Assembly: GCF_001194135.2 (NCBI RefSeq)
Contig: NC_068991.1
Coordinates: 38,773,862-38,823,338 of the forward strand
DNA from: Octopus bimaculoides
Lineage: Eukaryota
Length of the DNA stretch: 49,477 bases
Reading direction: 5' to 3'
Part shown: in pieces, positions 16,108 to 19,100 of the stretch
Position numbering within the stretch: position 1 is the stretch's first letter
How the letters are laid out: each line of letters starts with the position of its first letter
Position numbers and translations under genes: made by a program
The notes under the pieces: model-generated
What the model was told of the DNA's origin: nothing
Database searches by the model: none
What the model saw: only the letters and a program-made list of their open reading frames with translations

Positions 16108-19100
16108 CTGAAAGACACAGAAAAGTCATATTTTTTTCTAATAAATACTCACAAGATCAAACATTTCAATATCAAAAAACCCCCAAAATTTGCCTTTCCC
16201 CTCAACAATTTTACATCCGTAAGACAAATATCTTTCCAATTCAAGTTTTTGTATTTGGTTAGTTCAAAGAAAATACATGCACACTCAAATTTAAAATAAG
16301 TATGATGATACAGCATTTTAATAGTTTATAGGTCTAATTGAACCAAGCAAAAAAAAAAAAAAGTCTATGTAGTTGCTTGACATGCTGTAATTAGCAGCCA
16401 AATCTCCATCGAATTTCACCTTACTTTCTTAAAAAGAGAAACCCAAGAAACATTATGTTCGAATAAAGATAAGATGATCTTGGCTGGAATACCTTTGATC
16501 ACAGATTTACTTAATCCAAGCTGATCTGAGACTAATCAACAATAAGAACAGCCCAATTATATCACCATGAGCCTGTGAACTAAAATTCTGTTTGTTTCAA
16601 AGATAGGTATTGTTACTGTGTGACAATTCAGTTTCTTTTGAGCACTGACTGGTGCACCAAGTTTAGACACATAATAACTAAAATCTATGTCATAAAACAC
16701 ATTGATATTAACATACAATGTGAGAAGAAATATGGTGATGGTCAAACTATTATTAAATTATCTTTTTTAAAAGCAGAATGGATCTAAGGTCACATTATCT
16801 AATATGTCCTTCCTATTTAAAACATCAGAGTATGATTTAAGCAGATTTGACTGCTAATTCTTGCAGGTTGGACAAACATGTAGAGCCTCCCTCATTGGCT
16901 CAATAGATATAGATTTAATTGAAAAACTGATCAATTAATTTCAGTTATAGAACAGTAGAGGAAGTATGAAAAAAAGAAATTGATACTTACTCAAAAAGTT
17001 CTTTTAGAAATGTTCCATAGACGAGTGGATCAAAAAATGAGAAATACAAATATGTGGTGATATCAACAATACTGAAATAGAAATAAGTAGATGAAAATAT
17101 GAAAAATACTAAAATATAAATATGTGGTAATATCAATAAAACTAAAATACATAGAGAGATAGAGACAGGTATCTTACTATACAGGAGATACTTCGCTACG
17201 GCAGGAGGAAGAGGAAGGAGAGATAGAGTTAGAGAGAAACGGATGATGTTATGTTAGAGATGCATCAGGACATGCCTCCAAGGTACAGTGAGGGTAAATA
17301 TAAGTGGTACAGAGGGGATAGACAGGGATATCTCATTTATATATATATATATATATATATATATATATATATATATGTCAAACAACGACAATAAGTGCTC
17401 AACACTGCATTGGTGGATAAAATTTTTTTATTTGTGTATTAAGACTACTATTGGTTTCATATTAAGAAAAATTTCTTAATATCTCAATAATTTTTCAAGC
17501 CAATCACATGAAGGAATGGAGATAAACACCATTCCTCCATGTGATCAGCTTGAAAAATTATTAAGATATTTTTCTGAACATGAAACCAATGGTAGCCTTA
17601 ATATATATATATTAGGTTGAGTAAAAAGTAAGCAATGTTTCAAACCATGAAGAAGTTGTACCAGATTTTTGCAGAGTTTTGAATTTTTTTTAAACATTTT
17701 TTTGCAGTTGTCTAATACAGACATAGACTTGCCCAAATGCATCAATAAATTAACATTGATATTTTTTTCACCGTTGTTACAATCATCTGAAATGGAACTG
17801 TCAAAGCGCAATATTCGAGCAATTTGTTATTCAACTTCAAAAAAGGACATAAAGTAGCTGAAACATTTGGTGAAGAAATGATCAGTGAGAGGTCAGCTTG
17901 AAAATGGTTTAAACAATTTTGCAGTGGAGACCTGAGCCTTGAAGAGCGTGAGTGTAGTTAGTGGATGCCCATCTGTCATCGATGACGGTCAATTGAAGAC
18001 CATCATTGAGAAAGATCCACATTAAATTACTCGAGAACTGGCAAAAGAACTTCAAGTTAGCGAGAAAACTGCCTACAACCATTTGCATGTGATCGGAAAA
18101 TCAAAAAAGATTGACAAATGGGTACCACATGATTTGAATGAAAATCAGAAAATGCGCAGATATGAAATTTGCTCGTCGCTTCTTCTCCATAACCAGACTG
18201 ATCCATTTTTCGACTGTATTGTAACTTGCAATGAAAAGTGGGTTCTGTACAATAATAAAAAACGTTCTTTGCAGTGGTTGGACCAAAATGAAGCACTGAA
18301 AACCTTCCCTAAGCCCGAGCACTTCAAAAAGAAGGTTATGGTGAATGTTTGGTGGTGTACTGCTGGATCCCTCCACTATAACTTCCTAAAACCCAGAAAA
18401 ACCATTACTGCAGAAACATATTGGCATGAAATTACCAAAATGAACTAAAAACTGCTACTCCTCCATCCCAGACTGGTCAGCAGAAGAGGGCCAATCATTC
18501 TTCATGACAATGCTCGACCACACATTTCACTAATGATGCTCCAGAAGTTGAGGGAACTTGGCTACAATGTTCTTCCAAACCCAGCTTATTCCTCAGAACT
18601 TTCTCCTACAGACTACCACTTTTCAACCACCTTGATGGTTTCCTGCGAGAGAAGGAGTTCAAAAATCAAACGGATGCTGAAAGTGCATTCAAAAAATTCA
18701 TCAGCTCCTGAACTCCAGATTTTTATGTTACCAGAATAAACAAACTTGTCACTCATTGGCAAATGTGTATTGATTGTAATGGTACTTACTTTGATGAATA
18801 AAATTTCTGCATTGTTGAATTTCGTGTTTCAAAACGTTGCTTACTTTTTACTCAGCCTGGTGTGTGTGTGTGTGTGTGTGTAATTTCAACAATGGGAAAC
18901 AGAAAATATGGTCTCAGAGAAACTTCAGTGAGTCATTTGCTTATTTAGTCAGCAGTTTGGTTAGTTAGGGCATAACTCTAGTTTCATGGCATTACCATAA
19001 AAGGCTAAACTATCCTTGTACAGAACACTGAGCTTTCATAGATAATATTCACAAAAAGTTATGGTGTTCCCACATTTGAAATTGATTTATAACAACAACA

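Follow-up and report, generated by a model that had tools for sequence, protein, structure and literature searches.

The 49,477-nucleotide (nt) stretch of Octopus bimaculoides DNA analyzed here, which we call the window, carries on its minus strand a gene of 10 coding exons that is the one-to-one ortholog of TPRA1/GPR175 (all gene coordinates refer to the minus strand). [quoted passage not shown] Our subject is the boundary between intron 8 and coding exon 9, which is present twice in tandem. The original prediction for this locus was that the upstream version could serve as a second splice acceptor and encode an alternative seventh transmembrane segment (TM7) in a receptor without a cytoplasmic tail, with nonsense-mediated decay (NMD) of the transcript as the other likely outcome and a neutral duplication as the fallback. 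We find the duplication itself to be well founded; the upstream copy is probably former exon sequence that was absorbed into the intron.

A Pfam scan of the spliced exon 8 to 10 peptide returned PF10160 (Tmemb_40), the TPRA1/GPR175 family. The remaining exons were located by tblastn with a human TPRA1 sequence, which served as a lead only; exon boundaries were set from the sequence, and the gene model was checked by Pfam and by exact identity to a deposited protein. Coding exons 1 to 7 lie at 38776-38502, 37393-37261, 28884-28795, 25459-25387, 24720-24641, 21528-21400 and 20169-20109. Exon 8 (19322-19424), which encodes TM6, ends in phase 2 (..CTT TG|) and is followed by a gtaaga donor at 19321, and intron 8 extends over 2250 nt (17072-19321). 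Exon 9 (16991-17071, 81 nt) encodes the second half of TM7 and has a gtaagt donor at 16990, and the last exon, exon 10 (15852-16107), encodes a cytoplasmic tail that is conserved across cephalopods. All introns run from GT to AG, with a GTAAG donor in eight of the nine. The spliced product of 426 residues is letter-for-letter the same as XP_014789472.1 ([quoted passage not shown]), has no unusual features, and belongs to the family by its score of 217.5 bits against Tmemb_40 (cut-off 25), aligned over profile positions 3-246 of 255.

The core of the repeat, 17112-17149 against 17042-17079, is identical at 33 of 38 positions with an offset of 70 nt, the same alignment that the original prediction had given, and a repeat finder extends the match to 17088-17149 against 17018-17079 (46/62, 74%). 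The downstream member, the reference copy, holds the canonical acceptor (tatttcag) and the first 54 nt of exon 9. The upstream member, designated 9a, holds an acceptor and the counterpart of the same 54 nt, now intronic, and together with an 8-nt spacer it makes up the last 70 nt of intron 8. The repeat is genuine and chance does not account for it: in 2000 shuffles that preserved dinucleotides, run on the upstream 500 nt and in a separate series on the proximal, AT-rich 120 nt, the match never rose above 26/38 and 36/62. In the rest of the unshuffled 49-kb window, 33/38 is attained by only three local repeats that are not microsatellites. The peptide DITTYLYFS is identical in both copies despite six nucleotide differences, so that its retention through synonymous changes, also part of the earlier claim, is upheld. 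Within 9a the 9-mer TATTTTAGT occurs twice, at 17149-17141 and 17116-17108, 33 nt apart and in frame, and encodes YFS both times. The same copy is present in three independent assemblies, namely the window, O. sinensis GCA_006345805.1 and O. vulgaris GCA_951406725.2, and an assembly artefact is therefore excluded.

Orthologous loci were identified by full-length protein search in O. sinensis, O. vulgaris, Argonauta hians and the cuttlefish Acanthosepion pharaonis. In both O. sinensis and O. vulgaris the copy sits at the same -70 offset and matches the species' own exon 9 at 47 of 62 positions. A single base separates these copies from that of O. bimaculoides, tttAtt versus tttGtt, which in the 9a frame is a non-synonymous difference (I versus V). 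Neither the Argonauta hians nor the Acanthosepion pharaonis locus, taken over its full length, contains the copy: the top match, 33-35/62, equals background, and exon 9 is preceded by a CT microsatellite and a poly-T tract, respectively; the TPRA1 sequences of the two are otherwise nearly identical at the copied region. The original prediction had proposed conservation in other octopods as a check on the copy, and the answer is divided: it is kept in three Octopus species and missing from Argonauta and a cuttlefish. At a site where both outgroups read TAC CTG, the copy has TAT TTR, the derived form of Octopus. This dates the duplication to the Octopus lineage, later than the split from Argonauta and earlier than that between O. 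bimaculoides and O. vulgaris-sinensis. The Jukes-Cantor distance between the two copies is about 4.5 times (core) to about 10 times (62 nt) the per-lineage intron distance of two Octopus species.

Three AGs lie at this intron end. The distal AG (tattttAG|t) at 17142-17143 is preceded by 20 nt that are 80% pyrimidine and by an upstream AG-free zone of 29 nt, and the middle AG at 17109-17110 lies inside the second occurrence of TATTTTAGT; direct reading thus confirms both additional AGs, as well as the pyrimidine tract, that had been predicted. With these features, 9a duplicates acceptor and exon start in tandem and brings an AG and a pyrimidine tract of its own. The canonical AG (ctatttcAG|T) at 17072-17073 is the only acceptor seen in annotated and transcript-derived proteins. 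Its candidate branch points, which are motif matches only, span 17084-17100 and comprise TTCAT in two places (A at 17100, -29, and A at 17092, -21) and CTTAT in one (A at 17084, -13); these three motifs fall within the 3′ half of 9a, downstream of the middle AG. The same kind of motif scan found TTGAT and TTTAT as candidate branch motifs for the middle AG, and no yUnAy motif 10-60 nt upstream of the distal AG. An RNA fold of 16980-17240 gave z = 0.30, with no special structure that would hide or expose the upstream AGs. By consensus, the best-looking 3′ splice site of intron 8 is not the canonical one but a cryptic motif at 17196-17232, about 125 nt upstream of exon 9, in which a perfect CTAAC (A at 17229) precedes 21 nt of uninterrupted pyrimidines that lead to AG 17197-17196. 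This motif is largely conserved in an alignment with O. sinensis and may represent the ancestral branch and pyrimidine region, the counterpart of the CT-rich tract in Argonauta.

What each AG would produce can be read by translation. Splicing to the distal AG gives a product of 340 residues that ends in a hydrophobic segment and has no tail, as originally described; its frame stays open for 26 codons, with a mean Kyte-Doolittle value of 1.76 as compared with 1.16 in the genuine TM7. Splicing to the middle AG results in 329 residues, read in the same frame to the same stop, and AG 17197-17196 would add 124 nt, again in the +1 frame with an early stop. The shared stop, also correctly placed in the earlier description, is the TGA at 17063-17065, 72 nt before the exon 9/10 junction (exon 9 ends at 16991) and hence farther upstream of the last exon junction than the 50-55 nt taken to mark NMD candidates. 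9a alone (17141-17073) is 69 nt long, a multiple of 3, and joined through CA|A it would restore the frame into exon 10 for a product of 422 residues. Use of 9a as an exon of its own through GT 17072-17071 was considered and rejected, on account of a weak donor that overlaps the canonical AG, of the lack of a 422-residue protein in the collections, and of the loss of family-invariant residues.

We compared the segment encoded by 9a with an alignment of 113 TPRA1 relatives. Residues C315, Y324, Y333, F336 and L337 are invariant (113/113), and for D318 and P330 the count is 112 of 113 each. The 9a segment keeps C, D and both Y, as well as the motif residues T, T, L, F and S. It replaces P330 with I, F336 with L and L337 with F, each a replacement found in 0/113 relatives, and the distal-AG product also lacks the conserved tail motif FSY[KR]xQxD. 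A TM7 built from 9a therefore does not retain all family-invariant residues together with the tail motif. In the Pfam profile the real exon 9 (9b) contributes about 43 bits and 9a about 17-19 bits; the 340-residue product as a whole still scores 191.9 bits on Tmemb_40, and the 9a segment joined to exon 8 and the tail scores 41.2 bits.

Conservation of the copy between species is ordinary. O. bimaculoides and O. sinensis differ at 5.2-7.6% of positions in the introns of this gene, save for one gap-interrupted intron at 11.6%; in the copy, 1 position of 70 differs. Over the terminal 70 nt of each remaining intron, eight in all (about 70 aligned positions each), there are 0, 2, 4, 6, 2, 1, 6 and 1 differences; the copy lies within this range, and its conservation is therefore not above the neutral intron level. 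The two copies themselves differ by 16 nucleotides and 7 amino acids over 18 codons, for a ratio of non-synonymous to synonymous differences per site (pN/pS) of 0.43 (Fisher P = 0.065); for the first 11 codons the ratio is 0.23-0.29 (P = 0.02-0.04). Under a Hasegawa-Kishino-Yano (HKY) model whose parameters were taken from the introns of this gene (67% A+T, kappa 3.9), the probability of 7 or fewer amino acid changes given 16 nucleotide changes is 0.066, or 0.11 when two 3-nt clusters are counted as single events. Coding constraint on the copy was accordingly rejected, with the synonymous excess not significant under the AT-biased model of the introns (P ~0.07-0.11). The silent changes in DITTYLYFS consist of three third-position GC-to-AT transitions and one clustered TCA-to-AGT change (Ser/Ser). 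Of the nine G or C bases in this half of the exon, four stand at third positions, and a change to A or T is silent at all four. Because the clustered change lies in the in-frame 9-mer that occurs twice, it suggests a single templated event, a simpler account than three silent changes that arose independently. Differences are significantly fewer in the copy's 5′ 38 nt (5/38) than in the 24 nt that follow (11/24; Fisher P = 0.007), a contrast from which we infer that the 3′ half was remodeled into a T-rich tract.

Proteins and transcripts point to the canonical junction alone. All 19 cephalopod TPRA1 proteins retrieved, which comprise NCBI models from the three Octopus species, Argonauta and Acanthosepion along with Logan transcript-derived proteins, have the junction GLC|IVD, and the sole octopus transcript contig (Logan, run SRR3401912) is spliced there as well. 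None of the 340-, 329- or 422-residue variants appeared near the top of a full-length search of a collection of 5.8 billion clusters or in the 90% cluster, and concatenated alternative-junction peptides used as a query returned canonical TPRA1 clusters only. A 36-residue peptide in the 9a frame, exact to the window, had 0 matches among 1.84 billion protein representatives, although this is a short query, and a metagenome DNA scan with the exon 9 core pattern also gave 0 matches. Open reading frames of the window, looked up in public assemblies, had no recorded counterpart. An initial protein search with a 145-residue C-terminal query matched only an open reading frame for the tail, in genomic sequencing contigs of a species with a cephalopod-like tail; this query missed the 100%-identical octopus protein in a word-indexed search, and the full-length query found it.

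Taken together, we propose with a probability of about 0.65 that 9a is the intronised remnant of an Octopus-lineage tandem duplication across the intron 8/exon 9 boundary, which provides cryptic acceptors at most and no selected isoform. In the sequence of events we envisage, a segment of ~62-70 nt spanning the boundary would have been duplicated in tandem; the downstream copy would have been kept as the working acceptor, because it alone runs on without a break into the remainder of exon 9, and the upstream copy would have been absorbed into the intron. The 5′ half of the copy would then have drifted to the AT-rich composition of introns, while its far more diverged 3′ half would now be a T-rich tract from which the canonical acceptor draws its candidate branch motifs and its pyrimidine tract. 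The upstream AGs would be minor cryptic acceptors at most, and transcripts that used them would carry the premature TGA and be degraded or give a truncated protein. Several observations weigh against this proposal. The distal AG and its open frame are retained in three Octopus species, and the pyrimidine tract before the distal AG, at 80%, equals that of the canonical acceptor. The deficit of amino acid changes is borderline (P ~0.03-0.07, depending on the model), and some constraint on the 5′ half of the copy would also account for the contrast between its halves. Transcript evidence is thin, with one octopus transcript contig in collections where octopus RNA-seq is barely represented, and short queries have poor recall in the word-indexed protein search used here, which makes their negatives weak evidence; low-level or tissue-specific use of the upstream AGs is possible.

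The alternatives explain less of these data. A chance similarity or a faulty assembly could draw on the AT-rich and T-rich composition of the region and on the six N gaps of the window, but with no shuffle reaching the match and an identical arrangement in three independent assemblies we find this hardly credible at all. An unproductive-splicing switch, in which regulated use of the upstream AGs extends the exon by 70 or 37 nt, brings in the TGA and lets NMD tune the amount of TPRA1, would suit the position of the stop 72 nt before the last junction, the convergence of three upstream AGs (17197, 17143 and 17110) on one frame, the good pyrimidine tract at the distal AG and the retention of the element in Octopus. 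We nonetheless consider it unlikely, if deserving of some attention: conservation is no higher than at other intron 3′ ends, Argonauta and a cuttlefish lack the element while their TPRA1 is nearly identical here, the distal AG has no consensus branch motif, only the canonical junction was seen in our proxy searches of transcripts and proteins, the RNA has no special structure, and the 50-55-nt rule may not be valid for cephalopods. Quite improbable, in our judgment, is a selected 340-residue isoform with an alternative hydrophobic TM7 and no tail. Its open hydrophobic frame, the retained family residues C, D, T, T, Y, L, Y, F and S, the low pN/pS over the first 11 codons and the overall Tmemb_40 score speak for it. 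It would, however, break invariant or near-invariant residues in ways seen in no relative, lose the conserved tail and more than half of the segment's profile score, and depend on a transcript that is itself an NMD candidate; the sole change between species is non-synonymous, and no such protein or transcript product is found in any collection searched. Third-position decay from GC to AT, together with a single clustered change within the repeated TATTTTAGT, explains the synonymous pattern that had suggested a coding role, and the excess is gone under an AT-biased model. For the same reasons, and given the ordinary conservation of the copy, the fallback of a neutral duplication or an NMD fate fits better than the alternative TM7. 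Use of 9a in the manner of a mutually exclusive exon (17141-17073, donor GT 17072-17071), for a 422-residue protein with an alternative TM7 and a normal tail, benefits from a length divisible by 3, the frame-restoring CA|A and the 41.2 bits noted above. Its donor, TCA|GTATTG, has only 3 of 9 consensus positions where eight of the nine real donors of this gene are GTAAG, and it overlaps the canonical acceptor AG; with family-invariant residues lost and no 422-residue protein in the collections, we regard it as very improbable.

On the proposed reading of 9a as an absorbed remnant, the locus is of modest interest as a clean, datable case of a short tandem duplication that straddles an intron-exon boundary. 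The downstream copy rescues the mRNA, former exon sequence is reused as the 3′ end of the intron, and a ready-made cryptic acceptor is left open to later co-option. It is also a warning for annotation, as frame-preserving, coding-like similarity just upstream of an exon need not mean an alternative exon. A bolder view, that in the genus Octopus regulated use of the duplicated acceptor yields either a TPRA1 that lacks its tail and has its seventh helix rebuilt or an NMD-targeted transcript, is improbable. If it were true, the regulated acceptor would be a lineage-specific on/off or dominant-negative control of TPRA1 that Argonauta and Acanthosepion pharaonis do without, and use and regulation of an upstream AG would amount to genus-specific control of an orphan seven-transmembrane protein of poorly understood function.

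Several further features of the window were noted. Intron 8 contains, besides 9a, a mariner-type transposase remnant on the plus strand at 18083-18445 (Pfam Transposase_1, E = 4e-20), accompanied by another open stretch at 18533-18739, a nested palindromic element at 17429-17611 that resembles a miniature inverted-repeat transposable element (arms of 53 nt, 85%, and 42 nt, 90%), and a (TA)n microsatellite at 17334-17381 that is ~22 nt shorter in O. sinensis. The O. vulgaris protein CAI9730211.1 (549 residues) joins TPRA1, after ...VYADDT, to the downstream Rab-7L1 through an internal donor, ACAG|GTAGTG, at a site that corresponds to 15987-15989 (minus strand) of the window, inside the last TPRA1 exon. 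It is either a read-through or conjoined transcript or an annotation artefact; the downstream Rab-7L1 gene lies outside the window. An interspersed repeat is present in several copies in both orientations (22257-22730, 25775-25986, 31681-32122 and others), with translations that share ...LQS(N/D)... A reverse-transcriptase fragment lies at 34512-34620 and 34788-35039 on the plus strand (RVT_1, 25 bits, below the cut-off), beside a 10-N gap that has the same 12 residues on either side and looks like an assembly join artefact. A remnant of a retroelement integrase zinc-binding domain is found at 10455-10586 on the minus strand (Integrase_H2C2, E = 2e-11). The six N runs, or assembly gaps, are at 2662-3338, 5040-5136, 5939-6113, 27057-27937, 31786-31963 and 34555-34564; two of the N runs fall in TPRA1 introns 2 and 3.

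Known systems of duplicated or competing acceptors resemble the octopus locus to different degrees. Mutually exclusive exons can arise by tandem exon duplication, as Kondrashov and Koonin reportedly described in 2001 and Letunic and colleagues in 2002. Like them, the octopus gene has an in-frame tandem copy of a coding exon segment with the same 5′ phase; unlike them, it copies only the 5′ two-thirds of the exon, loses key residues, and has neither a credible donor (GTATTG overlaps the canonical AG) nor an intron between the copies. With NAGNAG and other short-distance tandem acceptors the locus shares an intron end at which several AGs compete, but the spacing is 37 and 70 nt as opposed to 3 nt, and the consequence is a frame shift in place of the gain or loss of one residue. 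The upstream AGs also recall alternative and cryptic 3′ splice sites that are coupled to NMD, in that they would lengthen the exon, change its frame and introduce a stop over 55 nt ahead of the last junction; the octopus element differs in not being ancient, in showing conservation that does not exceed background, and in that use of its AGs is only predicted. Events of this kind are known, for example from the potato RdRp gene, where an intron-exon boundary underwent tandem genomic duplication (PMC4974935). There, as here, a lineage-specific short tandem duplication covers the intron's 3′ end together with the beginning of the following exon, and both copies inherit an AG, a pyrimidine tract and a putative branch-like motif. 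The outcomes diverge, as the potato gene keeps the upstream piece of exon and gains a new intron, whereas in the octopus, where a new intron is not evident, the existing one absorbs the copy and the mRNA is unchanged.

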